Sequence record: PV764938.1
Direction: 5' to 3' (one strand)
DNA: 64,000 nt
Shown: piece after piece, positions 39,552 to 64,000 of the stretch
Layout of the letters: every line of letters starts with the position of its first letter
Numbering within the stretch: the stretch's first letter is position 1
Made by a program: the position numbers and the translations under genes
Notes under the pieces: generated by a model
What the model was told of the DNA's origin: nothing
Database searches by the model: none
Seen by the model: only the letters and a program-made list of their open reading frames with translations

Positions 39552-39723
39552 AAGTGGGCCCGTTCTGTTTCGAGGTGGAACCCATACCCAAAAGGTTACG
39601 CTGCGAGAGCGACCTTAGTGGAAACGTTGTCGTTTGCACTTAGAATTGTAGCCCGATAACGGTGGTACAATACCGGAAACCTACTCGCACCGTTCATCAC
39701 CTGGTCGATCCTATTTCAGCCCC
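39552..39723 (-). ncRNA. ssrA: two-piece (permuted) tmRNA, coding piece; tag (A)ANDNVSTKVALAA
   Basis: Starts GGGGCTGAAATAGGATCGAC; contains rhizobial-like TTGTACCACCGTTATCGGGCTA; tag ORF 39637-39596 gca aac gac aac...gca gcg taa. Confidence 0.93.
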
Positions 39724-39957
39724 ATCATAACAACATGACCCATATTGGTCGTTGGCCTCGTTGCCGTGCTACGCGCACTTAGATCCGACACATGTCGTCC
39801 GCTAACCACCAGCCCAATCCGTTCTTTATCCCGCCCTTGTCGCGAACTCAGTTGGGGAACTTGCATCTGGTAGTACGAGTGCTTGAATGCTTCCCTCTAG
39901 AATTTGATATCGAATCCTAGGCTTAACACGTTCAGCGCATGTTGTTATGATGGGGCT
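39718..39957. repeat. perfect 20-bp inverted repeat (39718-39737 / 39938-39957) enclosing 200 nt
   Basis: AGCCCCATCATAACAACATG versus CATGTTGTTATGATGGGGCT. Confidence 0.95.
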
Positions 39958-39968
39958 TCCGTTTAGGC

Positions 39969-40144
39969 CAGCACCACCAAAAACATAAGCCGCCGTCACA
40001 TGAACGACTACGCTGCAAACGAGGGTTCTTTTGTTCCTCTTGCCGTTTGCAGCGGTTTGAGGATTTGTTGTAACCCTGGGCCTATTAAGTTATGCGCACC
40101 ACTTTCCGTGCAGAAGGCCTCGTCTTATGTTTTTGGTGGAGCTG
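39969..40144. repeat. 20/21-bp inverted repeat (39969-39989 / 40124-40144) enclosing 134 nt
   Basis: CAGCACCACCAAAAACATAAG versus CTTATGTTTTTGGTGGAGCTG. Confidence 0.95.
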
Positions 40145-40200
40145 TGGGGTACCGCCCCCCAGTCCCATAGCGACTATTGAGATTGTATCAACAGCTTCAC
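40134..40200 (-). ncRNA. ssrA: two-piece tmRNA, acceptor piece (T-arm and CCA)
   Basis: GGGACTGGGGGCGGTACCCCACAGCTCCACCA resembles alphaproteobacterial acceptor piece; G3-U70 pair with coding piece; 5' end approximate. Confidence 0.9.
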
Positions 40201-40203
40201 CGC

Positions 40204-40233
40204 TATTTACACACAGGGCGGTACCCAAGTCAA
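40204..40233 (-). promoter_or_regulatory. tmRNA promoter (TTGACT-18-TAAATA)
   Basis: Late-type TAAATA at 40204-40209 and a -35-like hexamer. Confidence 0.6.
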
Positions 40234-40238
40234 CCTAA

Positions 40239-40700
40239 TTAATCCGACCCACCACAAGAACTTGAATCCGAGCTAGAAGAGCTACTGGAATCGTACGAGC
40301 TAGACGAACTGGAGCAGGAATCATCCGAAGAACTGCTATAGGATGAGGTATAGCTTGTGTAGGCGAACGGCGAAGTATCATAGTAGGAAGTGTCATCGCG
40401 ACGAGTAGAAGAACTCGTGGACGATGAACCCGAAGAGCTCGACGAACTTGTAGAACGTCTCGACGGAACACTATGATACGGGCTGTAGCTGGAGGAAATT
40501 GGGCGAGAGAAGCTCGGAGGAGTGGAGCCAACAAGATCGCCAGCAATTGTCTTTTGCTTCTTAGTCTTGAAGAACAGACCCAAGAAGATAAGGGTAGCAC
40601 CGATCGGGAATAGGATCCCGAAACCGGAGATAGAAAGTAGCACCGCGGCGACTGAAATTGCGCAGAGTGCGAAACCAATTACATGAAGGATTGAACGCAT
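40239..40700 (-). CDS. membrane protein with Ser-rich C-terminal tail
   Basis: Two hydrophobic N-terminal segments, long poly-Ser; GGAG RBS. Confidence 0.75.
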   Translation of the reverse strand: MRSILHVIGFALCAISVAAVLLSISGFGILFPIGATLIFLGLFFKTKKQKTIAGDLVGSTPPSFSRPISSSYSPYHSVPSRRSTSSSSSSGSSSTSSSTRRDDTSYYDTSPFAYTSYTSSYSSSSDDSCSSSSSSYDSSSSSSSDSSSCGGSD

Positions 40701-40761
40701 AATAGCTCCCAGTTGTTATTTCCAGGAGCGTTGCATAGAGTTTAATTAAAAATCAATATTA

Positions 40762-41046
40762 TTAGGGGCCGATGAAAACATCAGAGGAACCCGTTAGTAC
40801 GGAAGAACCGCAGCTTACGGGATCACCGATACGACCCGCTTGCTTATCGTTGATCCATACGGTTCCGCTACCCGAAGCAAGGTTGCCACTGTGAGAAGTG
40901 AAGCAGCTATGGGAAGCCCAAGCATCACCCTGACGGTGTGCGCCCAAATCATTTGTGAATACATCCGAAGAAGCTTCCACATTGGGACGACTGCTATAGC
41001 AGCCATGACCCGTGCATTTATCATTGAGACGAGCTGCGCCTGGCAT
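40762..41046 (-). CDS. PAAR spike-tip protein (T4 gp5.4-like)
   Basis: MPGAARLND.CTGHG; AHRQGD; AGRIGDPVSCG. Confidence 0.9.
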   Translation of the reverse strand: MPGAARLNDKCTGHGCYSSRPNVEASSDVFTNDLGAHRQGDAWASHSCFTSHSGNLASGSGTVWINDKQAGRIGDPVSCGSSVLTGSSDVFIGP

Positions 41047-41047
41047 C

Positions 41048-41779
41048 TTATGCTCCCAAAACGTTTGCGGCTGCGGATGTGAGCATTCCACCGAGGATCT
41101 GTTTCAAGCAGGGATCCTTCATCTGGAACTTCATCATTTGAGCCAAGTTCATCTTGCTCATGTTGAGCATCGACTTTGCCATCTTTTCGATTTCTTCAAG
41201 CATCTGTGTCATAGCTTTGGCGATTGCTGCCATTAGCTTTGCAACGAGTTCCTTGAGAAGATCCAAAGCGGCTTGTAGGTTCTCTTTAATGTTGGCGATG
41301 GCCGCTATAATCTCGTTCATGATATCACGACCAGCATCGAGAACCGAGCCCATGATATCACCGAAGCCCAGGCAGGGATTGCTGCCATAGGCTCCGACGT
41401 TGTTTCCGATTTCGCTCTGTACGATACTGGAAATAGTCGGAAAGTTCGCGATCAAACGATCGGTGTGTTCCTTATACTCGTCCAGTGCATCTTTAGCATC
41501 TTCAAGGTGATCCGGAATGGTCGTTGGGATATCCGGATTATTTTTCACGTCTTCGATGATTTCATCAAGATCGTTATTGGCTTGGTCTACTTCACAGGCA
41601 CGAGGGTTGGTCAGAACACCAGCAAACGGATTGGCTGTTGGCATACTGGTAACCATTTCCCTATATGTGGCCATGAGCTCTTCAGTTGGCTCTGCCGTGT
41701 TCATAATCCCAAAAAGCTCAGTCACATCTGGAGCTCTTGATGGATTATAGGTTTCACTCTGAAGTGCTGATGTCGCCAT
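41048..41779 (-). CDS. baseplate-region helical hypothetical protein
   Basis: Adjacent to PAAR; start approximate. Confidence 0.6.
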   Translation of the reverse strand: MATSALQSETYNPSRAPDVTELFGIMNTAEPTEELMATYREMVTSMPTANPFAGVLTNPRACEVDQANNDLDEIIEDVKNNPDIPTTIPDHLEDAKDALDEYKEHTDRLIANFPTISSIVQSEIGNNVGAYGSNPCLGFGDIMGSVLDAGRDIMNEIIAAIANIKENLQAALDLLKELVAKLMAAIAKAMTQMLEEIEKMAKSMLNMSKMNLAQMMKFQMKDPCLKQILGGMLTSAAANVLGA

Positions 41780-42355: not shown

Positions 42356-42385
42356 GAGTTATTCCTTTTTCCATATTTATGAGTC

Positions 42386-42889: not shown

Positions 42890-42976
42890 GTTGCCTCCAT
42901 TCCGATAATTTATCGGTTCACCAACATGAATTTTGATTCTGATAAGTACCCTGTGTAATACTCAAGCTAGGAGAAA

Positions 42977-44923: not shown

Positions 44924-45000
44924 ATCATATTTTTGGTTGACACTTCACTCAATCCTTACTACTTGGACGGCATACGACGTTAGGTAAGGATTGAGTTTTC

Positions 45001-45633: not shown

Positions 45634-47334
45634 TTGGATAATATGATTTTCATCGGTACCATGGTCGGCATCGGCCTGGTCGTACTGGTTGTGGTGGGTT
45701 TCATCCTCGCCCGCCTCTTCAAGCGTGCTTCAAAGGAAACGGCATTCGTTCGTACGGGTTTCGGCGGCCAGAAGGTCGTTAAGGACGGCGGCGCGGTCAT
45801 TTTCCCGATCCTGCACGACACCATCGACGTCAACATGAAGACGCTCAAGCTGGACGTTTCCCGTCACGGCACTGACGCACTCCTTACTGGTGACCAGATT
45901 CGCGTAGACGTTGAAGCATCCTTCTACACCCGCGTGAAGCCGGACGAGTCCGCTATTGCTATTGCTGCCCAGACGCTCGGCGACAAGACGCAGAATCCGC
46001 AGGCGCTGAAGGAAATCATCGAAAACAAGTTCGTCGACGTTCTCCGCTCGGTTGCGGCGCAGATGACCATGAACGACCTGATCTCCAAGCGTGCTGACTT
46101 CTCGGCGAAGGTTCGTGAAGCTATCGCACACAACATCGAGGCCAACGGTCTTGAACTCGAAGACGTCGCCGTTACCCGTCTCGACCAGACGCCGGTCAAG
46201 TTCCTTGACCCGAACAACGTCTACGACGCCGCCGGTCTCGCAGCGATCACCAAGGTGACCAAGGAGAAGGAACGCGAGCGTAACGACTTCGAACAGGGTA
46301 CCCGCGTTGCCATCGAGCAGCGTAACCTGGAAGCAACTCAGCAGTCGCTGGCAATCAAGCAGCAGAACGAATTCGCAACCCTGGACCAGGAACGCGAAAT
46401 CGAAACTCGCCGCGCCGAGCAGGAATCCCAGCTCGCTAAGCAGCGTGCCGACCGCAAGCGTGAAGCCGACGTTGCCCAGATTTCGGCCGACCAGGCAACT
46501 GCACTGGCTCGTACTGAATCGAACCAGAAGCAGAAGGAAGCTGAAATCACGGCAACCCAGCAGCTTCGCATTGCCGAGCAGGTCGCACAGATCGCCGTCA
46601 ACGAGAAGTCGGAAGCTGAATCCCAGGCACGCGCCAAGGCTGACACTGCTCGTGCAGAAGCTGTTTCGGCTGCTGAAAGCGTGAAGACGGCGGAAGCTGT
46701 TGCGGCAGCTGAACGTAACAAGCAGGTTGCGATCATCGCTGCTGAACAGGAAGCCGGCAAGGAAGCAACCAAGATCACGGTTCAGGCCAAGGCCGAAGCA
46801 GAAGCTGCCGACCTCCAGGTTCAGGCACGTCTGAAGAACGCTGAAGCTCTCGAGCGCGAACTCACTGTTAAGGCCGAAGGTGAGCGCAAGCTTGCTGAAG
46901 CTGCAAACAGCCTGAGCCCTGAGCAGGTACAGCTTCGCATCCGTCTCGCTGCAATCGAAGCTGCACCGCAGCTGGTTGCTGAAATGGCCAAGCCGATGGC
47001 TGCGGTCAAGAATGCACGTGTCGTTGCAGTCACCGGTCTCGGTGCAAACGGCGGTGCAATCGCCGGCGCAAATGGTTCTTCCGGCAACGTTCCGCAGGAC
47101 CTGACCAACGCACTGCTCAACTTCAAGTTGCAGTCGCCGGTTGTCGAACAGATCGGCGCCCTCGCTGGCTTCGATCTCAAGAACGGTCTCGCTGGTATCG
47201 GCGAATCGACGTTCAACTTCGACGACAGCGACCAGCCGGAAGCTGAAACTGTTGAAGCAGTCGAAGCACCGGTCGATACTGCGGCTCTCCAGAAGCTCGC
47301 TGGCATTACGCCGGAACGCCGTGTACGCAAGTAA
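45634..47334 (+). CDS. yqiK: flotillin/SPFH protein (YqiK-like)
   Basis: TM, AFVRTGFGG.KVV..GGA, GLELEDVAVT, long AE-rich coiled coil; TTG start with GGAG. Confidence 0.92.
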   Translation: MDNMIFIGTMVGIGLVVLVVVGFILARLFKRASKETAFVRTGFGGQKVVKDGGAVIFPILHDTIDVNMKTLKLDVSRHGTDALLTGDQIRVDVEASFYTRVKPDESAIAIAAQTLGDKTQNPQALKEIIENKFVDVLRSVAAQMTMNDLISKRADFSAKVREAIAHNIEANGLELEDVAVTRLDQTPVKFLDPNNVYDAAGLAAITKVTKEKERERNDFEQGTRVAIEQRNLEATQQSLAIKQQNEFATLDQEREIETRRAEQESQLAKQRADRKREADVAQISADQATALARTESNQKQKEAEITATQQLRIAEQVAQIAVNEKSEAESQARAKADTARAEAVSAAESVKTAEAVAAAERNKQVAIIAAEQEAGKEATKITVQAKAEAEAADLQVQARLKNAEALERELTVKAEGERKLAEAANSLSPEQVQLRIRLAAIEAAPQLVAEMAKPMAAVKNARVVAVTGLGANGGAIAGANGSSGNVPQDLTNALLNFKLQSPVVEQIGALAGFDLKNGLAGIGESTFNFDDSDQPEAETVEAVEAPVDTAALQKLAGITPERRVRK

Positions 47335-47356
47335 TCGGCTTTAACTAAACTGTTGG

Positions 47357-47383
47357 AAAAGGCTCCTTTTAGGGGCCTTTTTC
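47357..47383 (+). terminator. rho-independent terminator
   Basis: AAAAGGCTCC-TTTTA-GGGGCCTTTTTT. Confidence 0.75.
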
Positions 47384-47446
47384 TTTATCAGCAGTAGACT
47401 TTGGTACCAGCTTGTGTAATATTCCGCGCAACATATGGAGACAAAC

Positions 47447-48109
47447 ATGAACAAAATCCTTGGCGTCATTGGTGCCATTCTCTTGGGCGGCGCAATTGCA
47501 TGGGGCATCGTTACAATGCTCGGCGCAAGTCCCTTTGTACTGTTGGCGGCAATCCTCGCGGCCATGGTCGGTGGCTTCTGTGGCTACAATGGAATCATGG
47601 GGTTTCTCAAAGAGTTCGACAACAAAACCCAGCAAACTGAAACACTCCGCCTCACGCATGAGGAATTCACTGGTCTAGAGGGCCTTTCCGGCATCAACAC
47701 CGAGGAGTTTATCGAGCTAGTGCAGGGTGCGCGAAAGAAGCTGCGAGCTATCGTTGACGTGCGTATGCGTCTCATAGACGTAAAGGAAACCGTCGGGTTG
47801 CTTACTTTGGGCAAGCTCGGTGACGATATCATCAACGAAATCAAACGCGATCCCAAAGACTACCGACTTGCTCGGTCCTGGTTCAACACGCACTTGGATC
47901 AAACCCTCAACATCGCGACCAAATTCGAACAGATGCGCGGGCGCGTAAAGGGACAGGAACTCGCACAAATCACCGCCGAGTTCGAAACCACTGTAAAACA
48001 GCTGGAAACCAATTTCACCAAACTCCTGGAAGATCTCCGAGCCAACGATATGATGGCACTCAAGATCGACATGGAAGTGCTGAACGATCAGCTCAAACTC
48101 GAACGCTAA
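47447..48109 (+). CDS. xpaC: XpaC-like (5-bromo-4-chloroindolyl phosphate hydrolysis family) membrane protein
   Basis: 2 TM helices then helical domain with ARSWFNTHLD and LKIDMEVL; upstream of TelA as in xpaC-yaaN/klaC-type loci. Confidence 0.75.
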   Translation: MNKILGVIGAILLGGAIAWGIVTMLGASPFVLLAAILAAMVGGFCGYNGIMGFLKEFDNKTQQTETLRLTHEEFTGLEGLSGINTEEFIELVQGARKKLRAIVDVRMRLIDVKETVGLLTLGKLGDDIINEIKRDPKDYRLARSWFNTHLDQTLNIATKFEQMRGRVKGQELAQITAEFETTVKQLETNFTKLLEDLRANDMMALKIDMEVLNDQLKLER

Positions 48110-48119
48110 GGAGAACCCC

Positions 48120-49181
48120 ATGGAACAGACCAATACGATCCCGCTCGTTGGACTTGAAGTACCGAAAGCATCGGATTCCGTCAACATCACGCTCTACAAG
48201 AAAGAGCTGAATCTCGACGACACCACCAGCGTTATTAGCTGGGGCACCGGCGCACAGAAGAAGGTCGGTCAGATCAACGCACAGATGCTCGAGGGCGTGC
48301 GTTCGAAGGATGCCGGCGAAGTTGGTGCGGCTCTGAACTCGATGGTTACACAGATTCGCGGGCTGGACTTCGGCAAGGTCACGGAAAAGCAAGGCTTCTT
48401 CGGCAAGCTGTTGGGCAAGATCACCCCGATCGCTGAATTCGTTCAGTCCTTCGAGACGATTTCGAGCCAGGTTGAAGCTGTCGCCAACAAGCTGGAAACC
48501 CACAAAGTCGAACTGCTGAAGTCGATCAAGTCCCTGGACATCCTCTATACGAGCACGCTCGAATACTTCCACGAACTCGGCAACTACGTGAAGGCCGGCG
48601 AGGATATCCTGAAGGAACTCGACGAAGTCCGCGTTCCGGAACTCAAGGCCAAGGCCGAAGCTTCCGGCGATATGCTAGACGCACAGAACCTCAACGATCT
48701 CGTCGCCAAGCGTGATGCGTTCGACCGTCGCGTTCACGATCTGCGTCTGACCCGTCAGGTTGTCATGCAGACACTTCCGCAGATTCGTATGATCCAGGGC
48801 AACGACAACGGCCTCGTGCAGAAGATCGATACACAGATCCTCAACACGATTCCGCTCTGGGAAGGTCAGCTTGTGCTTGCGGTCGAGCAGTGGAAGATGG
48901 CTGATGCAACCAAGACGACCAAGGCCGTTTCGGATCTGCAGAACGAGCTGCTCGTCAAGAATGCAGAAATGCTGAAGCAGGGCAACGCCGAAGCCCGTAG
49001 GGAAATCGAGCGCGGCGTCTACGACGTTGAAAGCGTGAAGAAGTCCAACGATTTGCTGATCGCGGCGATTGAAGAATCCATCGCGATCACACAAGAGGGT
49101 CGTGCAAACCGCATTGCTGCGGCAAACGTACTGGTAGAGGCCGAAGGGCAGCTCAAGTCTGCCCTTCGTAACGCGGCTTAA
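48120..49181 (+). CDS. telA: TelA/KlaA toxic-anion resistance protein
   Basis: ISWGTGAQ, QTLPQIRMIQGND..LVQKI, TIPLW, NELLVKNAEMLK. Confidence 0.9.
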   Translation: MEQTNTIPLVGLEVPKASDSVNITLYKKELNLDDTTSVISWGTGAQKKVGQINAQMLEGVRSKDAGEVGAALNSMVTQIRGLDFGKVTEKQGFFGKLLGKITPIAEFVQSFETISSQVEAVANKLETHKVELLKSIKSLDILYTSTLEYFHELGNYVKAGEDILKELDEVRVPELKAKAEASGDMLDAQNLNDLVAKRDAFDRRVHDLRLTRQVVMQTLPQIRMIQGNDNGLVQKIDTQILNTIPLWEGQLVLAVEQWKMADATKTTKAVSDLQNELLVKNAEMLKQGNAEARREIERGVYDVESVKKSNDLLIAAIEESIAITQEGRANRIAAANVLVEAEGQLKSALRNAA

Positions 49182-52100
49182 CCGAAGAAGTCGTCGTAGT
49201 CACTACTTGGTGAACCAGGACCGCCGCTGGGGCTTGATGGATCCGGCGGCGGCTCCAAGATGTAGCACTTACCGATTGAACCCGTTGCCGTCGAGAACTG
49301 GCAAACTGCGGTCTTTGGCTTCGGTGGCAGGAAGCTTCCTGGGATACCCACTGTTGCGTCGGTTGTCGCTGTAGTTGCATCGGTTGCAGATTTGCCTGTT
49401 GCTGTCCAGTGAACTCGGTATGTACGATACTTTGTTTCACCTGTGACCAAGTCAACACCACGAATCTTAAATGTATAGGTCGTTGGAGTTGATGGCGGCT
49501 TAGTGTTGATTGGACCACCATTTCTAGCATCAAACTGCGACTTAACTGTGCTGTAGTTCATGAAGCTAAGTGTAGCGTTAGTCCAGCCCAAGAACTTCTT
49601 CGTTGGCTTGTAGTAGGTGTTACCGTACATTTTGAAGGATTCGTAGTGTAGCCATGGGCTATACTTACCATATCCGGCACCCAGATATCCATTGATCATT
49701 TCGTTTGCTGGGATATTAAAGCCAGTACCTGGGTATTGCTTTAGACCAGCAGCCGTTGCATCGTTGAATCCCGAGTACGACCACACCGGGCCACCATCAA
49801 GACCAACAATGAAGTCACGTGGAACCGTGTATGTGACATTGCCGGTTGGAGCCTTCGTAGTCTTGTCTGGGCTACCTACTGGACGCTGCGATGCAACAAA
49901 TCCCGCATAGCTGTTGGTACCAGCTAACTTGACGTAGTATTGACCCTTGATGTACGGATTCAAGTCGTTGCTGTTGGATCCAACCTGGTCGTAGATTGTC
50001 TTCATTGGGAAGACCTTCTGCGCACGAGTAATCGGATACGGGGACATACTCTGGCTTACCTGTAGTTGTTTGAACATTGGCGTACCGTATGTGCTCAAAG
50101 AGAAGTCCCAAAGACGATTATCGGACTGACAGATCGTTTGCTGACCATGTTCGTTCATGATGTCGTAGCGCACGTAGAAGCGAGACGAGAAGATGAACAA
50201 CTCGAATGTTGCATTCAATGGGAGCCAGAACTCGTTAGGACCAATCCAAGCAAATTCATCCAAAGCGTAGGATTGCGTGTAGGTTTGCTCATCAGGAACC
50301 GCTGTGCCATCGGGCTGTGGTGTATACACGGTATCGGTTGGCTTGTGGTAGATTGGTTTACCAGGAACCAAGACGTTCGGCTGATCCTGTTGCAGGATAT
50401 AGTCGGGAACCGCCTTGATGATCGGTGACATATCCGTGTCCAAGATATTGCAGGATCCAGGAACCGCAGTATCGCAAACTGGACGATATGTACCGTCTGG
50501 GCCAGCAACAAACTTCGTACCGGTATCCGAGACAAAGCAAGTACCAGGCTGCGACAAGTAAGGTGTACCTGTTTCCGTAAGCGCACCTGGAGGACTTACG
50601 TAGTGGTCACCCGTGATATACGACATAACGCCGGACGACTTTGTTGTCTTCGGATTTACCGTGTTGATCTGATTCGTATAATATCCGGGATTCGCATCGA
50701 AGTATTTCTTGTCAGCGAAATACAAGTCCTTTGGCTTGTACGAGATATTGTTGATTCTGATCCAAACCAGCTTTGTTGGCTTTGGAGAAGCAGCCGCAGT
50801 CTTGACGTTCGCAACACCCGTTGGACGAACCGCAAAACGTGGATTCCCAGCCTTGTTCTTCGGGATACGAAGCGTAAAGATCTGAGTGAAGTTTTCACCA
50901 ACTGTCTTCGATTTGCTTAGGACCAACTCGTAAGTCTTGTCGAGGTTTGTGACTTCAACACGCGAAGTGTCAGCACCACCCTCAAGCTTAACCTGAACGA
51001 GATATTCATCCTTAGTCGTGTTCGGTGCAATCGGAGTGGTCGAGCACTCGTCACCAACGGGTTGGTCCGCAATGTTGAAGGGAAGCTGTACGAACTCACC
51101 ATCAACGACGACCAATGTTACCGGGCCCTGAGGAGCATTCGGAACGTATACGATTTGACCAGGCTCTAGAGTTGCAGGATCTGGTAGAATACGACCGAGG
51201 ACCTTAACCCAGAGTCCGCACTCACCAACTGGTTCCCAAACACCGTAGAAGTTCAGCTTGTAGGTACAACCCGCGGAGCTCGTCGATACACCAGGTTCAA
51301 CCGGTGGATATTCTACTGGCAACGGGATGATCTTAACAAGCAGGCTGAGTTCACGGCATTTGCCCTTCTGGGTGCAAACGTCGAACATCAAGCGTTCCAT
51401 CCAAATTGTTGGATCGTCACCGCAATGGTGTTTCAGCTTAACGAGACCATTGTTGACGTCAGCCTGTGTAAAGACTGCCGGAATAATCTCGACTTTGTTG
51501 TTGTCGTTATTGATGAACTGAGTACGCTCTGGATTCAACGTGATCGAAATCTGATCGTCAGTGGAACCGAAATCAACCACATACTTGAGTTGATCCGGAG
51601 TCAGTGTGATCTCGGAACATTCGTCCATCTCCGCATAGTTGTTTTCGACTTCCGGATATGGCCACTCGATGACCTTGATGTTGAAACGGCCAGCGGTGCA
51701 TTTGAATTCGTTTACGCAAGCACTGAAACCAAAGTATTCTTTACCAGCGCCCGTAAACAAACCCTGTACGCAGACTTTACCTTCATCGAGATCCTTGTGA
51801 GTGAACTTGTCACCGATCTTCATCTTGACACCGTTCAAGAGAATCTCGGCTTTATCCATTAGGCTCAGGTAAGTAACCGTATAGGTAACCGGGAAACGTT
51901 CCCAAAGTGGATCCGTCGGTGGATCTGGGACCGGAGGAACTACTGGTGGCGGAATCTCAACAGCTTCCATATCCTCATATGTGGCGTACTGTTGAGACAA
52001 TGCGGAGAAACCATACTGAGCAGGACCGTCAAAAACACTACCCGAGGGAATCGTATAGGTGATCGTCGTGGAGTCATCCAACGGCAATACCGCGTTATTC

Positions 52101-53101: not shown

Positions 53102-54267
53102 AGATCAATACTTTCCGATGCTAGTCCATCATTACTTAGCCCGTTGCTGGTTAGGACCAAGGCATACCGACGAACAAACGATTCGCCTGTTCTAGGGTCA
53201 TAAGCAGTGACAGTGAAAGGATACCGACCCGGCTTCAAGGGAAGCTTCCATGGTTGAGTGCCCGCGAGGCTTGTCGGTGTACGATCGGCTGTTCCGATAT
53301 AACCAACGCTCGAAAACGCAACGCCCAAAGGAAGACCACCATCCCAATAGAGACGTTCCTTTATATTTCTGTAACTAGATAATTTATCATATCCAGGACC
53401 GCGGTCTGGGGAATCCACAGGCAAGTCACTGTTCACGACATAGGTGGACCAATCCACGATATAGCCGGCTGCGGGCTTTGTATTGACCGGAGGAATATCA
53501 GTGCCTGCACGAAGCTCCCAAAGTGCATTCGGTGCATTCGACGTGAAAGTCCAGTTGAAGTTGGTTCCGACTTCCGCATAAATGACGTTATCACCGATTT
53601 GACGGAACTTAGGTGTGATCGAGAGATCCAGCGAAGTTTCTACGCAACGGCTTTTAATTGTGCAGGCATTGAACTCCAGACGCTCAACGGCATTACCCAA
53701 GCGCGTGTTGACGTACACGACATCGCCTGCGTTGATATCCGCTTGTGTGAACATCTCTGCGTTACGACCGCGCAAGCTAATGTAACCGTTAGCCGGCTTG
53801 TTCGTCAACGTGTAGATGATTTCATCTGGCGCAAAGCTAGGATCAACCACGCTGAGCAGGTTGTTCGCGAGAATAAGAGTTCCTTCTTCACGCAGGATAA
53901 CCGTACCTGGATCTATACCCGCTGTAGGATCAACCGGACGCTTAATGGTGATTGCGAACACAAAGATGCCATTCTCGGGAGTAGCAATCTCACGAGGCGG
54001 CATACAATCCGAATACATGTCGCCGGTGATATCACCGAGATCCTGTTCCCACATGGAGAACTCGAAGGAATCTTCAGTCTCATTGACACCTGGATCCAAT
54101 GGAACCGTGCTGTGATAAAGAATGCGACCCGCATTGATGTCGGCTTGAGTGAACTTGGATCCCACTTGTAGTGGGACCCCGTTTCTTGACAATTTACCCA
54201 ATGTAGGAAGCTTTCGGATCTTGAAGAATCCTTTGTCTGCTACCGATGATTGAATCTTATGAAGCAT
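53098..54267 (-). CDS. CSPG-cadherin repeat protein
   Basis: Two FTQADINAG repeats; N-terminus paralogous to the 1307-aa gene. Confidence 0.75.
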   Translation of the reverse strand: MLHKIQSSVADKGFFKIRKLPTLGKLSRNGVPLQVGSKFTQADINAGRILYHSTVPLDPGVNETEDSFEFSMWEQDLGDITGDMYSDCMPPREIATPENGIFVFAITIKRPVDPTAGIDPGTVILREEGTLILANNLLSVVDPSFAPDEIIYTLTNKPANGYISLRGRNAEMFTQADINAGDVVYVNTRLGNAVERLEFNACTIKSRCVETSLDLSITPKFRQIGDNVIYAEVGTNFNWTFTSNAPNALWELRAGTDIPPVNTKPAAGYIVDWSTYVVNSDLPVDSPDRGPGYDKLSSYRNIKERLYWDGGLPLGVAFSSVGYIGTADRTPTSLAGTQPWKLPLKPGRYPFTVTAYDPRTGESFVRRYALVLTSNGLSNDGLASESIDL

Positions 54268-54279
54268 CAGTAGTCTCCC

Positions 54280-57200
54280 TTACACGTATTGGATTTCGAA
54301 AGTCCAAGTTGCCGGCGATGGGCCAGTCACGCAAGTTTCAACAACCTGACACTCAACGTATCCGGAAGTAATGCTTGGGGTGAACGAGAATGTCTTCTCA
54401 CCATCAGCCGATGTTTGGCATGTCGAAGCCGCTAGAATTGCACCGGACTGGTCACGAACATAAGCACGTGCCGAACCCGCTGAAACCAAGAACTTCAAAG
54501 TCATCGGAGCCACTGGGGTCTTCAACTTGATTGTGCGCGATGCACGTCCATCCGAATCTGTATCAGCCGGAGACAATACAAAGCCTTCATCGTGTGTCAG
54601 CGTATCCAGGTCTTCAGCGGATTCTGGATCAGGATCCAGAACATCATCGTAGTCCAAGTCAACGTCGCAGAGCTGGAGTTCGTTCAGCGTAATCGCCTTT
54701 GTTTCCATCTCAAACAAAGTGATACCTGTGTTTGCGCATACCCACGGTGGGTTGTTGATCTGCTTGAACTTGATGTCGAAGGTCTGGTTTGTTGCGTTGA
54801 ACACATCACTGTTTACGTCGAACTTGAAGGAGTCCGGCTTAGTGAAGTAGGACAAGCTCGTGTAGTTGACCAGGTTCGCATAGATGTCAGTGAGTGTGAA
54901 TGTGTCACCGACGACCAAAGCCACGCTGTTACGTTCAAGCACGCCATAGATTGGCAAGCTACGAACCGTAAACACCATGTTGTCCTTGTTGTAGGTGCTA
55001 CGCAGGTTCTTGATGCTCAAGCTTACTGGAGTGATCGCACGCTTGGTGCACGGATCAATCGTCATACCCTTGTTGATGAGTTCCGGCGGTGGCGGTGGGA
55101 TGATCTTAATCGGAAGCGTGAGCGGCGTAACAACGTTGGTCGCCGAGTCAGTTACCGAGAAGTCAAAAGAGTCCAACAGTGCGCCTTCAGTGGTTTCACA
55201 ATACATCATGTTACCACCAAGAATATCCGCGTATGTGAATGTGCTGCCCTCAGCGAGCGTGACGCCATTACGCTGGACAGTACCGTGAATCGTGTTGGTC
55301 AGCATGGTAATGATCAGCTGACTATCAGAGGATTCCTTATCTGTAATACGGATATGGTTGTTTGTGATTTCCGCACATGTGAGTTCGCCAACGGAAAGCT
55401 CATTGATAACAACTTCCGGTGGACGATCCGTTAGGATAATCTTGATCTTGAAGACTGCGTCAATGTGTTCGATGCTGTCAGTGACACGGAACTTGAACTG
55501 ATCCTTGTCCATGAGAAGCTGATCAGGATCCGGAGCATACTGGAGCAAACCGGAGTCGATGTCGGCCTGTGTGAAGCTTACGGCATCGCCTACTGGCAAG
55601 GCAAGTTCAACACCACCCAGCAATAGCTTACCCGCAGCTGGCAACGTCAACAACTTGTAGAGAATCTGAGTCGCGTTGGACACAGCGCCGGATTCAGCAA
55701 GCAAATATGTGTTATCGATTGTTGCCGGAGGATCAGCCTGAACAACTGTGAGTTCATTGTTCTCTACGAGCTTGAGACCCGGCAGGAATTGAATCACGTA
55801 GACGCCGCTAACCGCACAGAACCCGTTGGTTACGGAGAACTCGAAACGATCATCCGGAGGAGTATCTGTTTCGTGCTTGTAGGTGAATTTCATATCCTTG
55901 ATATCTTGGGAAGTCCAAGTACCAGTTGTCTCAACAACTTCGACACCACCAACGAAAAGCTTACCGAATTCAGGCTTCTTTGTGAGAGTCCAAACGAATT
56001 CCTTTGCATCAACGCCTTCGTTCGACGCGAATAGATCAAACTCCGAAATAGCCTTTTCCTGTGTGTAGGAAGTCTTCAACGGAATGTTTGTGATATCTGG
56101 GCAAACCAATGGCGGTGGTGGGAATACGATGTGAATCGCAAGATCCTCAACCACGTTGTTCTCATCGTAAAGCTTGAAGAATGCAAAGTCTTCCATGATC
56201 TCGTTTGCAGGAGAACCCGCAACGTAACGGAATGTCAATGCTTCCCATTCTGTACGATTGAACTTCTGACCAACTGTGGCGGGGTTACCGTTGATGAACA
56301 GGTCACCATGCTCGGGCAGAGCTGTCAGTTCCCACCAAACCTTATCCGGGGTTGTGTCATCGTCTGTGAAGTCGAACTTGTCGAACTTCCAGCTAACTTC
56401 ACCGTTGCGTTCGCAAAGATGAGTTTCGTTCGTGACCATATACGGAGGCTTGTCCTCGACAACTAGGATCTGGATCGGAAGAATCAAAGGAATCTTCAAG
56501 CCACCATCCTTGAGGATGAACTTGAATTGGTCAGTCAGGGGATCGTGAGTCGTACAATCGTGAATGTAGGAAATGTTGCCGGCGAGTACATCAGCATAGG
56601 TGTATTTGGTGCCGATTGTTGCTGTCATGCCGTTGATACGGAGCATACCATGTAGCGGCAGCTCGGTGATTTCCATTTCAAGATCCGGAGGAAGCAGACC
56701 TTCGGGGTCAGTGATCTTGAGGTTTGCTTCGCCTGGAATACCAGTGTCGCACTTTGGAACCAACAGTGGGTTGATTTCAACGTTCGGTGGTAGGTTCGGG
56801 ATCAAACGAATCGGAAACTTATTACCGGGAATCGTTTGCTTGCTATGGGAAACTTCAAACTCGAATTCGTCAGTTGGAGTATCCGAGCAATCCTGAGTGA
56901 AAGTGATTCGACCCGCAGCAATATCCGCGTTTGTCCAAGTCGTACCAATAACCATCGGTGTGCCATTCTTCTTGAGAATGCCATGCAGAGGAAGCTTGGT
57001 CAGCTTGAACGTGATTACCAGCGCCGGATCATCTTCATCCGATGCAACCAGGAGCGTATCGTCGATAACGCCGGTCTCACATTGCAGGACTTCAAGTGGG
57101 CCATTTGGGCTGACAACAATTGGAAGGTCTGTGAGCTGAATGTGAATATTCAAGACGTAGACGTTGGCCGATGTTTCGGTAGCGGTTTCACCCGGAGTCA

Positions 57201-57843
57201 GACCAGACCACTTGTTCTTGGTATCGCGAACCTTAAACGTGAGAACGTCCAGCTCAGCTTCGTCGCCATTGTGCTTATAGGAAATACGACCCGCGATGAT
57301 ATCAGCCATCGAGAATTCGCTATTTGGACCCATCGGCAACGGAGAACCGTTCTTGAGGATCTGACCATGAGTAGGCCAGTTTTGGATCCGGAAGAAGATA
57401 GCTGTCGGGCTATCATACAAGTCGGTAAAGTTAATGTTACCGGTTGTGATCTTCTGCTCAGTATTTTCCTTCACGTACATGTCATTGACAGTACCTTCAG
57501 GCGGACCATCTGGGAGCGAGTATCGAATTTCGAAGTCTCTTAGCTCGGCAGAACCATCGGTTGTGTCGATGATACGAATCTTGTACTTGATGCTGATAAC
57601 CGTTTTGTTGGTTGGATCAGAAGTGTACTTGATAACGTTGCTATCGACTTCGGCCTGTGTGAACGATGTAACGGGTACGCCGCCCTTAGTGATTGCGCCG
57701 ATCGCCGGCGACGCACTAACAACTTGATATTGAATCTTGTTTGCAGCGGGACCAGTAGCTTTTAGGAATGCGCTTGTGATGTTCGTTGTACCTGTCGCGT
57801 TAACGGTCAACGGAGAGTTCACTGTTACTTTAGTGAGTGCCAT
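54280..57843 (-). CDS. tandem CSPG-cadherin repeat protein (roughly 9-10 repeats)
   Basis: About 115-aa repeats with P.HG.L...G...FT.ADI..G.I.Y.H and D.F.F.V.D; TAAATA at 57873. Confidence 0.8.
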   Translation of the reverse strand: MALTKVTVNSPLTVNATGTTNITSAFLKATGPAANKIQYQVVSASPAIGAITKGGVPVTSFTQAEVDSNVIKYTSDPTNKTVISIKYKIRIIDTTDGSAELRDFEIRYSLPDGPPEGTVNDMYVKENTEQKITTGNINFTDLYDSPTAIFFRIQNWPTHGQILKNGSPLPMGPNSEFSMADIIAGRISYKHNGDEAELDVLTFKVRDTKNKWSGLTPGETATETSANVYVLNIHIQLTDLPIVVSPNGPLEVLQCETGVIDDTLLVASDEDDPALVITFKLTKLPLHGILKKNGTPMVIGTTWTNADIAAGRITFTQDCSDTPTDEFEFEVSHSKQTIPGNKFPIRLIPNLPPNVEINPLLVPKCDTGIPGEANLKITDPEGLLPPDLEMEITELPLHGMLRINGMTATIGTKYTYADVLAGNISYIHDCTTHDPLTDQFKFILKDGGLKIPLILPIQILVVEDKPPYMVTNETHLCERNGEVSWKFDKFDFTDDDTTPDKVWWELTALPEHGDLFINGNPATVGQKFNRTEWEALTFRYVAGSPANEIMEDFAFFKLYDENNVVEDLAIHIVFPPPPLVCPDITNIPLKTSYTQEKAISEFDLFASNEGVDAKEFVWTLTKKPEFGKLFVGGVEVVETTGTWTSQDIKDMKFTYKHETDTPPDDRFEFSVTNGFCAVSGVYVIQFLPGLKLVENNELTVVQADPPATIDNTYLLAESGAVSNATQILYKLLTLPAAGKLLLGGVELALPVGDAVSFTQADIDSGLLQYAPDPDQLLMDKDQFKFRVTDSIEHIDAVFKIKIILTDRPPEVVINELSVGELTCAEITNNHIRITDKESSDSQLIITMLTNTIHGTVQRNGVTLAEGSTFTYADILGGNMMYCETTEGALLDSFDFSVTDSATNVVTPLTLPIKIIPPPPPELINKGMTIDPCTKRAITPVSLSIKNLRSTYNKDNMVFTVRSLPIYGVLERNSVALVVGDTFTLTDIYANLVNYTSLSYFTKPDSFKFDVNSDVFNATNQTFDIKFKQINNPPWVCANTGITLFEMETKAITLNELQLCDVDLDYDDVLDPDPESAEDLDTLTHDEGFVLSPADTDSDGRASRTIKLKTPVAPMTLKFLVSAGSARAYVRDQSGAILAASTCQTSADGEKTFSFTPSITSGYVECQVVETCVTGPSPATWTFEIQYV

Positions 57844-57902
57844 AAGGATGAGCTCCAAGTCATAATTTCATCTATTTATGGTATTCCTGAATGACGTTTT
57901 GG

Positions 57903-60992: not shown

Positions 60993-61042
60993 GTTGACAT
61001 TCCTGATTCCTATGTTAGTATGCGACTAACAAAGGATAGGTT

Positions 61043-61558
61043 ATGACAAAGTTTTTTCATGCAGAGCTGAACGCTCACAAAGGCTTAGGCATCGACATTG
61101 ATGAAACGCTCATCAATGGCCCGGGCAGCTATTTCCTGCAGGAATGGGTTCAAGAGTATCACAGCCAGCTTGAGCTGCATCTGATCACGTTCCGCACCGG
61201 CAAGTGGCTCGATCAACTCGCCGACGACGTTTATCGTTGGGGTATCGAACCCCATATGTTCCAGGGCATTCACAGCGTTCCAATCGAAACTGCAGGTCCG
61301 TTCTGGGACCTCGTAAACGCGATCGGCGACAAACGTGCGAAGAATTTCCATCGTCCCAAATGGGAACGTGGTCTTGCCCATCACAAGGTCACCGAAGAAC
61401 AGTACGACGCGATGGAACTAAACCTTGCGCTGTGGAAGGGCTCCAAGTGCAAAGAGCTTGGCCTTACGGCGCTTGTCGATGACTTGGAGCATTGGGTTGT
61501 CCCCGGTTGTAACGCGCACGGCGTTACGTGGATCAACTCGCTTACGCTGCGTCCTTAG
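61043..61558 (+). CDS. HAD-superfamily phosphatase
   Basis: GIDIDETL (DxDxT), LITFR, K and LVDD motifs; early promoter at 60994. Confidence 0.75.
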   Translation: MTKFFHAELNAHKGLGIDIDETLINGPGSYFLQEWVQEYHSQLELHLITFRTGKWLDQLADDVYRWGIEPHMFQGIHSVPIETAGPFWDLVNAIGDKRAKNFHRPKWERGLAHHKVTEEQYDAMELNLALWKGSKCKELGLTALVDDLEHWVVPGCNAHGVTWINSLTLRP

Positions 61559-61877
61559 GCGGCCGATAATCAACCGGGAGGATCTCATCGGGATTCACCC
61601 GGCAAAGCCCGCACATTCCGCCATCTTCATCGCGGCTTGCATTTTCGATGGCCATCTTTAGCTCAATCAGCATAGTGGTCATCGCAGCATTTACGTTAGC
61701 TGCAATTTGCGAGGCCATCATTTGGCCCGCATTCCGCATGATATCTTCGATGTTATTGCTGCCGTATCCGGATCCACTGTAATAGGTTGTAGGAACCCAC
61801 GAACGGTAGGTCAGTTGTTGGACTTTGTCCATGAGAATGTCCGCGTCTACTACTTTCTTTTTAGCCACAATAGCCAA
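61542..61877 (-). CDS. hypothetical protein
   Basis: TTG start with GGAG; ends convergently. Confidence 0.55.
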   Translation of the reverse strand: MAIVAKKKVVDADILMDKVQQLTYRSWVPTTYYSGSGYGSNNIEDIMRNAGQMMASQIAANVNAAMTTMLIELKMAIENASRDEDGGMCGLCRVNPDEILPVDYRPPKDAA

Positions 61878-62209
61878 GCTCCGCCGTCATTTTGTTTCTT
61901 AATTTTTCGGACTCTGGGATGCAACGAGGCCCATGTCTCAAACTCCTGAGATATCTGGCCACTCTTTCCCGTAATGTGCTGGACTTTCTTAATCCCTAAA
62001 TAGAATGCTTGTTCAAGATGATCACTGCTCGCTTCATAAGCTTGTTGAATCGTGTAGTTGTGAAGATCCAATACAGGCGAAAACGATATATCCTGAACCT
62101 GAGGACGAGTCGCGCGAGTTGGCAACGGAATACTTTCAGATAGGTTGAGCTTCACCCCTTTGGTGAAGTCGTCCCAAAGCTTCCTCTCTGTATCCGTAAG
62201 CTCACGCAT
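61850..62209 (-). CDS. Smr-domain endonuclease (SmrA/SmrB-like)
   Basis: N-terminal MRELTDTERKLW, LDLH, ITGK, DGGAWLLWL. Confidence 0.85.
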   Translation of the reverse strand: MRELTDTERKLWDDFTKGVKLNLSESIPLPTRATRPQVQDISFSPVLDLHNYTIQQAYEASSDHLEQAFYLGIKKVQHITGKSGQISQEFETWASLHPRVRKIKKQNDGGAWLLWLKRK

Positions 62210-62297
62210 TTCTATTTTGACTCTACTTGTCTGAACCAGCTATATTTTGACTTAACAGGACACGACGTTGTCTGTCAATTTTTACAGGAGAAATCTT

Positions 62298-62741
62298 ATG
62301 TACGTTTCCACCAAGACCTATGGCCACGATATCGGACTGAGCTGTGCTTTTCGTCAATGGCGCGCCGAATCGCATTGCCGATTCATTCACGGCTACGCGC
62401 TGAAGGTCCACCTGGAATTTGAAGCTGACGAACTGGACGCCCGTAACTGGGTTGTTGATTTCGGTTCGCTCAAGAGCTTCAAGAAGATGCTTGAAGACAC
62501 TTTCGACCACAAGCTATTGGTGGCCGAGGATGATCCGGAGCTTGAAACACTTATGGACCTTCATGCAAAGGGTCTGGCTGATGTTGTAGTTCTTCCGAAG
62601 GCTGGCTGTGAGGCTTTTGCCGAATACGTCTTTGGTGCTGCTGAGACGTGGCTACAGTCGAATGGATACACTCCGCGCGTTCGTATGCGCCGCGTGGAAG
62701 TTTCCGAACACGGCGCAAACTCTGCGCAATTTGTTGCTTAA
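62298..62741 (+). CDS. queD: 6-carboxy-5,6,7,8-tetrahydropterin synthase (QueD/PTPS)
   Basis: HCRFIHGY, VDFGSLK, FDHK, VSEHGAN; AGGAG RBS before ATG 62298. Confidence 0.9.
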   Translation: MYVSTKTYGHDIGLSCAFRQWRAESHCRFIHGYALKVHLEFEADELDARNWVVDFGSLKSFKKMLEDTFDHKLLVAEDDPELETLMDLHAKGLADVVVLPKAGCEAFAEYVFGAAETWLQSNGYTPRVRMRRVEVSEHGANSAQFVA

Positions 62742-63388
62742 TTTCGGTCTTCGACTTCAGCAACCTGGTCCGCAAACATTAGCTTGAGGACCAGGACTTC
62801 GTTTAGCTTGTCCACGTAAACGAATGTATCTCGGACAACACCTTCCGGATGTCTTTCATCCACGCTATTCGAATATTTCTTGCAGACTAACTTGTGATGA
62901 ACGCCGAGCTCAGTTAGGGCTTTGGCGTTCTCATCGTCTGTGCCCCAGTTACGGTTGCGCATTTTCACACGGAAACGGAACTCTCCGTAGAACTTACCCT
63001 TATCGTTGTTTTGACGTGGCAAAGGCTTGCCCCAGTGCGCGGGATTTGTCTGACGCACACTGTTGACGAAGAAACGGCTGTTGTGGGTCTCAATCCAACG
63101 CAAAACCGCGGGATCGTTCCCGTAGACGTAGAAGTCGTAGGTTGCCTTCACACTGACAAGGTGCGCACCCAATGGATCCAGCGCATCATGAAGAACCTGC
63201 TTGAGTTCATCAAAGTGATGCCACGATTCCAAGCTTGGACTCAGCGCGACACGGAACGCATACTTGGCGAAGAACTTGGGCCTATGGAGCATTTCAGACG
63301 CCTCGGCATCCAAGATTGCGTTGTCAACAAGACGCGCAATTGCTCGCTCCATTCTCTGCTCATAAGTCCACGCCATGGCATGCTCCAA
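62738..63388 (-). CDS. hypothetical protein, divergent F-x4-DA-x-LFKL family
   Basis: VYVDKLNEVLVLKLMF near C-terminus. Confidence 0.65.
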   Translation of the reverse strand: MEHAMAWTYEQRMERAIARLVDNAILDAEASEMLHRPKFFAKYAFRVALSPSLESWHHFDELKQVLHDALDPLGAHLVSVKATYDFYVYGNDPAVLRWIETHNSRFFVNSVRQTNPAHWGKPLPRQNNDKGKFYGEFRFRVKMRNRNWGTDDENAKALTELGVHHKLVCKKYSNSVDERHPEGVVRDTFVYVDKLNEVLVLKLMFADQVAEVEDRN

Positions 63389-63503
63389 AAATAAGGTCGT
63401 GCCATATTTAACACAAATCGTTTATTGACACAACTGGGTGATTTTTGGTTGACACGACCATTTCCTGCTTTATGTAGGACACAATAATCGAAAGGATTCG
63501 TTA

Positions 63504-64000
63504 ATGAATAGCCAGGGGTTTAGGGTTTCACATCACGGTGACCAGGCACAAATGCAGGTGGATCGTGAAAAGCGCCTGGATGCCTTCCAAGATATGTCGC
63601 TCAAGTTCATCAAGGATGTGAAGTTCCTGCATGGCGGCGACATGGCTAAGGCCGTGATTGAGTCCCTTTCCGAAACGCTTGGAAAGCAGTGGTCTTCGCG
63701 TATCATCTTCGACATGATCGCACGCAACGATGAGGTTCCCGCTTACGTTCGGGTTACGCTCCGTGTGAATGCACAGAATGGCGCGGCTCCACAAAAGATT
63801 CCGCTCATCAAGGGTTTCCGTTGGCTCACCGGTACCGGTCTGAAGGAAGCCAAGGATGCTATTGAGGCCCTCATGTCTCGCGTCGAGCTTTGGGAGCTTG
63901 AGCTGGCCAAGCTTAACCGTTATCCAAACTATCGCGAAGCCCCGTATATCCAGATCGAAGTCCGCCAGGACACTTACGACGAGGCTGCGAAAGAATACAC
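63504..64000 (+). CDS. protein with ribosomal bL12 (L7/L12) C-terminal-like domain, truncated by window end
   Basis: Hand translation open to end; KIPLIKGFRWLTGTGLKEAKDAIE matches bL12 KI.VIK.VR..TGLGLKEAK..VE. Confidence 0.8.
   Translation, partial: MNSQGFRVSHHGDQAQMQVDREKRLDAFQDMSLKFIKDVKFLHGGDMAKAVIESLSETLGKQWSSRIIFDMIARNDEVPAYVRVTLRVNAQNGAAPQKIPLIKGFRWLTGTGLKEAKDAIEALMSRVELWELELAKLNRYPNYREAPYIQIEVRQDTYDEAAKEY

Follow-up and report, generated by a model that had tools for sequence, protein, structure and literature searches.

A two-piece tmRNA and a small Smr-domain protein in the translation tool-kit of Sinorhizobium jumbo phage Phosso

The Sinorhizobium phage Phosso, of soil origin and with S. 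meliloti as host, has a circular genome record of 469,473 bp (PV764938.1). Here we analysed a window of 64,000 nt, which is 100% identical to positions 310001–374000 of the record, window position 1 being record position 310001. The window encodes a two-piece tmRNA with its own tag and, at a distance, a cluster of genes for a small Smr-domain protein, a CCA-adding type enzyme, a QueD-like enzyme and a bL12-tail protein. These parts are identified, intact and conserved in related phages. We read them, with a probability of about 0.6, as part of a jumbo-phage translation-maintenance tool-kit that consists of two independent parts rather than of a dedicated closed circuit. The original prediction on this DNA had proposed that they may form one complete loop of ribosome collision, mRNA cleavage and ribosome rescue.

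The permuted tmRNA gene and its spacer

Two Rfam models place a full-length tmRNA on the minus strand, tmRNA_permuted (RF04321) at 39596–40198 with 113.3 bits against a gathering score of 47, and alpha_tmRNA (RF01849) at 39553–40242 with 108 bits against 50. With scores so far above gathering and the tag translated as ANDNVSTKVALAA, the predicted two-piece tmRNA with its own tag is borne out. The gene order is permuted, the acceptor piece (ending at 40134) being upstream of the coding piece (starting at 39723). The tag frame starts at an alanine codon, ends with a hydrophobic degron of the ALAA type and is closed by a stop codon; the comparison of the tag covered the Rfam consensus.

The acceptor piece has the 3′ terminus ...CAGCUCCACCA at 40134, with the ACCA encoded in the gene, and a T-arm of CUGGGG/CCCCA. 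Its acceptor stem of 7 bp is formed with the coding piece as GGGGCUG/CAGCUCC and has G:U at position 3 (G3:U70). The G3:U70 pair is an alanine identity element.

The tmRNA is absent from GenBank PV764938.1, in which no feature lies between CDS 479 and CDS 480, and the window leads to a correction of the deposited record in this respect. ARAGORN is unreliable on this window: it called neither tRNA nor tmRNA there despite the Rfam tmRNA, which it misses probably because of the long spacer. The tmRNA counts in phage surveys using ARAGORN alone may be underestimates.

Phage tmRNAs, the two-piece ones included, have already been catalogued (PMC4131195, PMC9004378). They were found in 402 of 18,146 phage genomes, 53 of the 402 being two-piece and 50 of these 53 coming from marine or aquatic samples (PMC9004378). 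Phosso is similar to Melnitz, the pelagimyophages and the DSS3P8-like roseophages in having a permuted alpha-type ssrA, which in those cases is carried by lytic phages. It differs from the mostly aquatic two-piece cases by its soil origin, by the lack of a detected riboswitch and by a 410-nt spacer that bears antisense segments.

Two relatives carry a syntenic tmRNA downstream of a PAAR gene. One is a 480-kb IMG/VR contig (tmRNA at L242 6910–7310) with a spacer of 102 nt and the tag ANDNSVASQPVALAA, and the other is a 10-kb contig (L243 6910–7323, 150.7 bits) with a spacer of 86 nt and the tag ANDNTVEEMALAA. The acceptor stem shows compensatory change, from GGGGCUG/CAGCUCC in Phosso to GGGGGCG/CGCCUCC in the relatives, while G3:U70 is retained, and a hairpin of the coding piece swaps U-A for C-G between them. 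In the three tags, the middle varies and the ANDN start and the ALAA end are constant, as in the Rfam alpha consensus. Because the stem changes are compensatory, the G3:U70 pair is kept and the tags vary only between their constant ends, the pattern of sequence conservation indicates a working tmRNA gene rather than scrap of host DNA.

Other searches with the tmRNA reached less far. The coding piece is 70–72% similar to those of RcXuper, vB_RpoS-V10 and DSS3P8, and the tmRNA region, searched against the phage collection by megablast and blastn, matches Phosso itself only. A lineage-specific pattern of 21–23 nt finds the same 480-kb contig alone in the IMG/VR and JGI metagenomes. The general alpha-tmRNA patterns of 14 and 20 nt match more than 120 viral contigs and are too unspecific for use. 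The protein encoded beside the tmRNA at 40239–40700 has no relative in IMG/VR.

That the gene is a passenger, namely host ssrA scrap from an integration site, or a decoy instead of a working rescue RNA, appears very improbable. Integration at tmRNA genes is indeed common and prophages contain fragments of them (PMC9004378), the 20-nt 5′ motif of alpha tmRNAs occurs in more than 120 IMG/VR contigs, and the predicted fold has both mature ends masked by the Phosso spacer. However, the gene is full length with its tag frame intact, its G3:U70 pair present and its CCA encoded, it sits at the same locus in the relatives with compensatory changes and lineage-specific tags, and no integrase is annotated nearby.

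At 410 nt, the spacer of Phosso exceeds those of the relatives (102 and 86 nt) by about 300 nt, and it contains two adjacent segments antisense to the tmRNA ends and flanks (Table 1). By estimate, chance alone would produce a perfect 20-nt inverted repeat in some 700 nt roughly 2e-7 times. The 480-kb relative lacks the leader-antisense segment in its spacer, where the best match is 10–11 of 20–21. In the minimum-free-energy fold of the precursor, both antisense segments are paired (z = -4.3), whereas the relatives have instead a simple closing stem between trailer and leader, of 11 bp in L243. No known RNA family was detected in the spacer by an Rfam scan at a permissive threshold.

Processing duplexes, a maturation brake and a rearrangement scar are all candidates for what the antisense segments are. 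An antisense-bearing tmRNA spacer is a point absent from the literature searched. Besides, the stretch 39938–39992, when read on the plus strand, resembles a mini acceptor-stem hairpin with CCA but has G:A at position 3.

The Smr protein and its neighbours

The Smr protein matches Pfam Smr (PF01713) over residues 47–107 with 29.4 bits against a cutoff of 25.7, and has an LDLH motif at residues 47–50. Its AlphaFold2 model, built with 16 homologues, reaches a pLDDT of 82.6 and shows a beta-alpha-beta-alpha-beta-beta core. The nine best Foldseek matches of the model are all Smr domains, from MutS2, SmrB, YdaL, NEDD4-binding protein 2 and B3BP. The top one is the MutS2 of T. thermophilus (2zqe; TM 0.83 on the target, rmsd 1.4, probability 1.00), and the others include 4och, 3qd7, 2d9i, the disome-bound MutS2 of B. 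subtilis (8r55_z, 8qpp_W) and the SmrB of E. coli, likewise on a disome (7qgr_v).

Sequence and profile searches against PDB gave only a spurious match to CENP-M and one to a eukaryotic L9. NCBIfam gave none at E ≤ 0.01, so none to its SmrB and SmrA models, and no PHROG model matched. With the Pfam score above cutoff, the Smr fold in the model and an invariant D-x-H, the original call of an Smr protein with the DLH motif holds.

Searched with a profile, 1.84 billion representative proteins yielded 537 relatives, 158 of them at E ≤ 1e-10. Among the 150 relatives listed, almost all have 100–135 aa and most are aligned near their full length; most homologues carry PF01713. Over 44 diverse members (27–65% identity), the residues W12, D48, H50, G81, G84, W93 and G110 are invariant. 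W12 belongs to an N-terminal helix of residues 6–16, and the second motif reads TGKSG.

Compared with SmrB and YdaL (SmrA) of E. coli and with B. subtilis MutS2, the Phosso protein shares the Smr fold and the D-x-H motif, and like stand-alone SmrB-type proteins it has an N-terminal extension before the domain. It is unlike all of them in its low identity of 15–23%, its TGKSG motif and its much shorter length of 119 aa. No paper on phage Smr proteins was found in the literature searched, and relative to that literature a widespread small phage Smr family beside bL12-domain, QueD and CCA genes is new.

The Smr gene lies in a conserved neighbourhood. In the contigs L133 (480 kb), L292 (434 kb), L294 and L295, the order is kept as topoisomerase, topo IV-A, p511, p510, the bL12-like gene, p508, QueD and Smr, and it continues with an overlapping ORF of about 100 aa, HAD, the small paralogues, CCA and the giant Cadherin_3 proteins. 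The Smr-CCA neighbourhood is conserved also in L296, L297 and a 19.8-kb JGI contig, with six unrelated genes between Smr and CCA in L296. Distant Smr relatives in phage-like contigs adjoin an ORF with the Ribosomal_L12 domain, PTPS/QueD and a PolyA_pol gene.

The Agrobacterium phage Atu_ph07 (490 kb, Polybotosvirus) keeps CCA, HAD, small ORF and Smr together in the same local order as Phosso, with identities to Phosso of 44% for Smr, 42% for HAD, 59% for CCA and 65% for PAAR. Unlike Phosso, it showed no tmRNA at the loci examined, and neither a bL12-like nor a QueD neighbour could be detected.

The 108-aa ORF that overlaps the Smr stop also has its 3′ end overlapping that of the convergent HAD-like gene by 17 nt. 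Its homologues hold the same overlapping position in L133, L292, L294 and L295, and all relatives seen, Atu_ph07 included, have an ORF of like size and placement after Smr. It may be a partner or a regulator of the Smr nuclease. The five small paralogues share also a [DE]WL[E] block, and their copy number varies among the relatives.

The tmRNA sits among baseplate genes 18–22 kb from the Smr-CCA cluster, and the two are in different transcription units. The genes in between are SPFH, TelA-like ('toxic anion resistance') and three giant ORFs. A promoter scan counted no more sites than in shuffled controls. The giant ORFs are of 1307, 389 and 1192 aa, at 49178–57858 on the minus strand and 45634–49181 on the plus strand, and those of relatives carry Cadherin_3 matches. 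In L294, the gene of the topoisomerase large subunit carries an intein at 2945–4927 (Pfam Intein_splicing).

An Smr domain may act on DNA; the Phosso protein would then nick DNA in replication, recombination or repair and be unrelated to translation, which we regard as improbable. Some sources label the homologues 'DNA-nicking Smr family endonuclease', but such names are automatic labels and not tests. The best structural matches are MutS2 Smr domains, but among the MutS2 entries matched 8r55 and 8qpp are themselves ribosome-bound. The cluster does lie beside topoisomerase II genes, but the nearest conserved neighbours, the bL12-domain protein, QueD and CCA, are of translation and tRNA themes.

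The CCA enzyme, the bL12-tail protein and the motif-level calls

The CCA enzyme matches the Pfam PolyA_pol head with 105.8 bits, PolyA_pol_RNAbd, and the tRNA nucleotidyltransferase phrog_2244 with 209 bits. Among the NCBIfam models, PRK13299 for CCA enzymes matches it best (196 bits, below the 290-bit cutoff), ahead of the PcnB models of 106 and 74 bits, and its translation shows GGAVRD...DIDL, RRD and EDYLR. The CCA-adding enzyme predicted at 57954 is thus confirmed by Pfam and PHROG as a class II tRNA nucleotidyltransferase, its PRK13299 score being below the equivalog cutoff that would set a CCA-adding enzyme apart from A-adding and CC-adding ones and from poly(A) polymerase. The CCA is encoded by 60 of the 62 phage tRNA genes called by ARAGORN and by the tmRNA. 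Because the CCA is already in these genes, the enzyme plausibly serves end repair rather than maturation.

The bL12-like protein crosses the window end. Pfam Ribosomal_L12 (PF00542) matches it with 31.6 bits against 25.9, over profile positions 8–39 of 67 only, and its phmmer matches in PDB are to bL12 only. The AlphaFold2 model has a pLDDT of 68.7 and folds the C-terminal half as beta-alpha-alpha-beta-alpha-beta. Its top nine Foldseek matches are bL12 but weak (best E 3.7e-3, TM on the target 0.57–0.67), with ClpS next. In distant contigs, homologous ORFs also match PF00542. The original call of a bL12-CTD protein is upheld to the extent of this partial Pfam match above cutoff and the predicted bL12 topology.

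Its helix-turn-helix K-I-x-x-I-K-x-x-R-x-x-T-G-x-G-L-K-E-A-K-D matches those of bL12 C-terminal domains. In the N-terminal half, however, a three-helix domain replaces the dimerisation and bL10-binding domain of bL12; this half has no Pfam match, is strongly conserved among the few homologues and has an invariant SETLGKQWSSRIIFDM block. NCBIfam L12 scores 24.3 against a cutoff of 84.4 bits. The protein at 63504 is a bL12-tail protein and not a bona fide ribosomal bL12.

Further genes were called by motifs. The motif definitions applied in this analysis, D-x-H, G-x-G, DxDxT with the four HAD motifs, KxDG, GGxVRD/DxD, RRD and EDxxR, are those of the respective families. The candidate HAD phosphatase at 61043 has D18-I-D20-x-T22 (DIDET), T49, K132/135/137 and D146-D147, all invariant in three homologues of 42–53% identity. 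It has no match in Pfam (even at an E of 10), PHROGs, NCBIfam or PDB, so that of its original assignment the four motifs stand and a profile or PDB match is lacking.

The ligase-like and Pol-beta nucleotidyltransferases proposed at 18805–20857 likewise have their short motifs and no profile support, the two proteins being without a match in Pfam, PHROGs, NCBIfam and the PDB sequence search. The genes overlap, the former having ligase motifs I, IV and V, and their products might work as a so far unrecognised pair for joining or tailing the ends of nucleic acids. The ASCH protein proposed at 5555 finds no support in Pfam, NCBIfam or PDB, and its sole match is PHROG 625.

The Smr, HAD-like and CCA proteins might also form a healing module for RNA 3′ ends, in which they jointly trim or cut, dephosphorylate and rebuild the CCA, independent of any collision of ribosomes. 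This is a tentative possibility, in our view rather unlikely. Consistent with it are the adjacency of CCA, HAD, small ORF and Smr even in the distant Atu_ph07, a CCA enzyme left to repair by the encoded CCA, the lack in that enzyme of any Pfam domain able to supply phosphatase activity, and a ligase of the Rnl1 family elsewhere in the genome. This ligase (TIGR02308, 110 bits, below cutoff) lies beyond the window at a distance of about 200 kb.

An Rnl1-family ligase and a HAD-like protein labelled 'polynucleotide kinase' also recall the Pnkp and Rnl1 tRNA repair of T4. But the Phosso HAD-like protein, unlike T4 Pnkp, has no kinase P-loop and no profile match. Against the module, no kinase domain is present, the motif-level HAD protein could equally be a nucleotidase, and in L296 the six unrelated genes part Smr from CCA.

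Table 1. Features of the Phosso window with their positions, strands and the basis of each call
Feature	Position	Strand	Basis
Whole permuted two-piece alpha-type tmRNA precursor	39553..40242	-	RF01849 and RF04321; syntenic homologues L242 6910-7310, L243 6910-7323
Acceptor piece: helix 2 5′ strand, T-arm, 3′ acceptor strand CAGCUCC, encoded ACCA	40134..40198	-	Rfam alignment; CCACCA end at 40134
Intervening spacer, 410 nt	39724..40133	-	between acceptor and coding pieces
Spacer segment antisense to acceptor 3′ end and trailer (40121-40144)	39969..39992	-	22/24 by self-blastn; 20/21 in ungapped scan
Spacer segment antisense to leader and coding-piece GGGGCU (39718-39737)	39938..39957	-	20/20
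Coding piece: 5′ acceptor strand GGGGCUG, pseudoknot region, tag frame, 3′ tail	39553..39723	-	Rfam alignment
Tag reading frame ANDNVSTKVALAA and stop	39596..39637	-	translation
Terminator-like hairpin and T run directly after tmRNA	39530..39551	-	identical in 480-kb relative
Class II tRNA nucleotidyltransferase (CCA-adding type), 522 aa	57954..59522	+	Pfam, PHROG, NCBIfam
Five tandem small paralogues, 83-113 aa	59506..60992	+	common C-terminal F...A.LF[KR]L.W[L]; no family match
HAD-like phosphatase candidate, 171 aa, record label 'polynucleotide kinase'	61043..61558	+	motifs only
108-aa ORF overlapping Smr stop by 19 nt	61542..61868	-	conserved partner ORF
Stand-alone Smr-domain protein, 119 aa, N-terminal helix	61850..62209	-	Pfam Smr, AlphaFold2, Foldseek
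QueD-like 6-pyruvoyl-tetrahydropterin synthase	62298..62741	+	Pfam PTPS 72.5 bits, phrog_2389 151.8 bits
Conserved hypothetical protein of cluster, 212 aa	62738..63376	-	no family match
bL12 C-terminal-domain-like protein, 173 aa, crosses window end	63504..64000 (record 373504-374025)	+	Pfam, phmmer, AlphaFold2, Foldseek
Ligase-type motif protein (KLDG, EGVVI, FKVVDK), 411 aa	18805..20040	+	motif level only
Pol-beta-type GS...DID protein, 286 aa	19997..20857	+	motif level only
Protein originally called ASCH, 91 aa	5555..5830	+	PHROG 625 (function unknown) only

Tool-kit or closed circuit

The rest of the Phosso genome is rich in translation genes. The record lists elsewhere about 70 tRNAs, ThrRS, CysRS, IF-1, bS21, a peptide deformylase and further Clp ATPases, and Pfam confirms IF-3, RRF, ClpX, ClpP, ClpS and a Ro60/TROVE protein of the phage. 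No broken genes were met in the annotation, which was read as a whole. Such a set is not peculiar to Phosso. According to the passages quoted from Al-Shayeb et al. 2020 (PMC7162821), phages of more than 200 kb recurrently carry IF-1, IF-3, S21, L7/L12, the CCA-adding enzyme, Que genes, RRF, PDF, tmRNA and aminoacyl-tRNA synthetases.

The closest published description is that of the Sinorhizobium jumbo phage AP-J-162 (471.5 kb), with 66 tRNAs, one tmRNA, bS21, 'L7/L12', IF-3, a tRNA nucleotidyltransferase, peptidyl-tRNA hydrolases and RNA ligases (PMC11242549). It shares the host group and the genome size class with Phosso, as compared by the published description only, in which Smr is unmentioned (PMC11242549). 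Smr proteins are not among the huge-phage gene classes quoted from PMC7162821 either. The huge-phage sets quoted from there include SmpB, whereas in Phosso no SmpB is annotated, no direct search for it having been made.

In the tool-kit reading, the first part would be a functional two-piece tmRNA, transcribed as one precursor and cut into the acceptor and coding pieces. It would be charged with alanine by the host AlaRS via the G3:U70 pair and delivered by the host SmpB to the ribosomes stuck on broken mRNAs, where ANDNVSTKVALAA would be added. The ALAA end would route the tagged product to ClpXP, which is also phage-encoded. In fact, ClpX recognises ends of the ALAA type, and by encoding ClpXP the phage carries the protease that would handle such products. 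Because the tag ends in ALAA, we consider the link of tmRNA to ClpXP more concrete than the link of Smr to tmRNA.

The second part, 18–22 kb away, would serve ribosomes and tRNAs with the bL12-tail protein, QueD, Smr, the overlapping small ORF, the HAD-like protein and the CCA enzyme. The CCA enzyme would repair the 3′ ends of tRNA and tmRNA rather than make them. The Smr protein would be an endonuclease whose active site is intact and whose N-terminal docking helix is invariant, and would most likely act on ribosome-associated RNA. All of these activities are inferred, as are the partners and any passing of substrates from Smr to the tmRNA.

The loop of the original prediction goes further. 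There, Smr would recognise ribosome collisions in the manner of E. coli SmrB and cleave the mRNA, the upstream ribosomes would reach the new 3′ end and be rescued by the phage tmRNA, the CCA enzyme and the bL12-like protein would support this process, and the whole would counter the host defences that stall translation or cut tRNA. A docked nuclease would agree with the short N-terminal helix, linker and Smr domain and with the invariant W12, D48 and H50, the structural neighbours include the ribosome-bound MutS2 and SmrB, and Smr adjoins a bL12-domain gene in distant contigs. Moreover, tmRNA, ClpXP and Smr coexist in Phosso and the 480-kb relative.

The genomes otherwise tend to part Smr from tmRNA. 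In Phosso they belong to separate units at a distance of 18–22 kb. In Atu_ph07, which carries Smr, HAD and CCA, no tmRNA was found at the PAAR or Smr locus by a local Rfam scan, nor in its published annotation table. Conversely, the tmRNA-bearing roseophages and Rhodobacter phages (RcXuper and the DSS3P8 group), whose tmRNAs are related to that of Phosso, give no match to the Phosso Smr in a single-query tblastn. These absences are weak evidence, since they come from a single-query tblastn and a local Rfam scan; nonetheless they do not speak for an obligate circuit.

The lack of an NCBIfam match to SmrB or SmrA, the lack of an annotated SmpB and the absence of any visible link to defence also speak against the loop, which we think unlikely. 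Because no SmpB is annotated, the loop is not complete as had been proposed and host factors are needed. What stands of that interpretation is that its parts exist and look functional; sequence evidence coupling the Smr cleavage to the tmRNA rescue is nil. The purpose of countering host defences has no sequence support and is pure conjecture. A general translation tool-kit, as known from huge phages, would account for the gene set just as well (PMC7162821, PMC11242549).

Several points weigh also against the tool-kit reading that we prefer. No SmpB is annotated in Phosso, again with no direct search for it. Synteny extends to the topoisomerase and giant Cadherin_3 genes on the flanks, so that much of the neighbourhood conservation would be shared ancestry, from which the neighbourhood may simply persist; it shows retention and proves no coupling. 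Both mature ends of the tmRNA are paired with the spacer in the predicted fold, and tmRNA maturation could thus be impaired or regulated in Phosso. The confidence of the bL12-like model is modest (pLDDT 68.7; Foldseek E ≥ 3.7e-3), and the HAD call is made from sequence motifs.

Some other genes of the record touch on the same functions. ClpX, with a zinc finger and AAA_2, and IF-3 are side by side at PV764938.1 380983–382829, about 7 kb beyond the window end; in the relative L295 (1–1407) ClpX/IF-3 is within 10 kb of the Smr gene, and the Phosso ClpP and ClpS are elsewhere in the genome. Two tRNAs with the anticodon CUA and an encoded CCA (171983–172058 and 446731–446806), called tRNA-Pyl by ARAGORN, are of the amber-suppressor type, and UAG read-through could raise the load of ribosomes reaching the mRNA ends. 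The Ro60-type protein at 290301–291965 has TROVE and Ro60 vWA domains (Pfam 163 and 160 bits). Ro60-type proteins normally pair with Y RNA.

Three genes are labelled 'peptidyl tRNA hydrolase' (17908–18324, 176653–176985 and 281210–281626). In NCBIfam, two match the archaeal/eukaryotic-type Pth2 with 71 and 54 bits, below cutoff, and the third weakly with 17.6 bits. They were considered as rescue factors of the ArfB type and rejected, as no ArfB, release-factor or bacterial Pth model matches them.

A more daring view is that the small Smr proteins define a family specific to jumbo phages (about 110–130 aa, 537 representatives), with an invariant Trp in the N-terminal helix and the D-x-H site intact, that this family is a viral ribosome-collision endonuclease beside a bL12-tail protein, that in the Phosso lineage the tmRNA and ClpXP join it into a ribosome quality control of the phage's own, and that the spacer antisense segments control maturation. 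We offer it as speculation that will probably not hold as a whole. The parts found here belong to the known translation set of huge phages; the Smr family with its neighbourhood and the antisense spacer have not been described before in the literature searched.

The window adds one well-documented example of giant phages bringing their own translation parts. Should the Smr family act on stalled ribosomes, a counterpart of the bacterial SmrB and MutS2 response to collisions would be known from viruses for the first time, and it would become testable how phages keep the ribosomes running late in infection.

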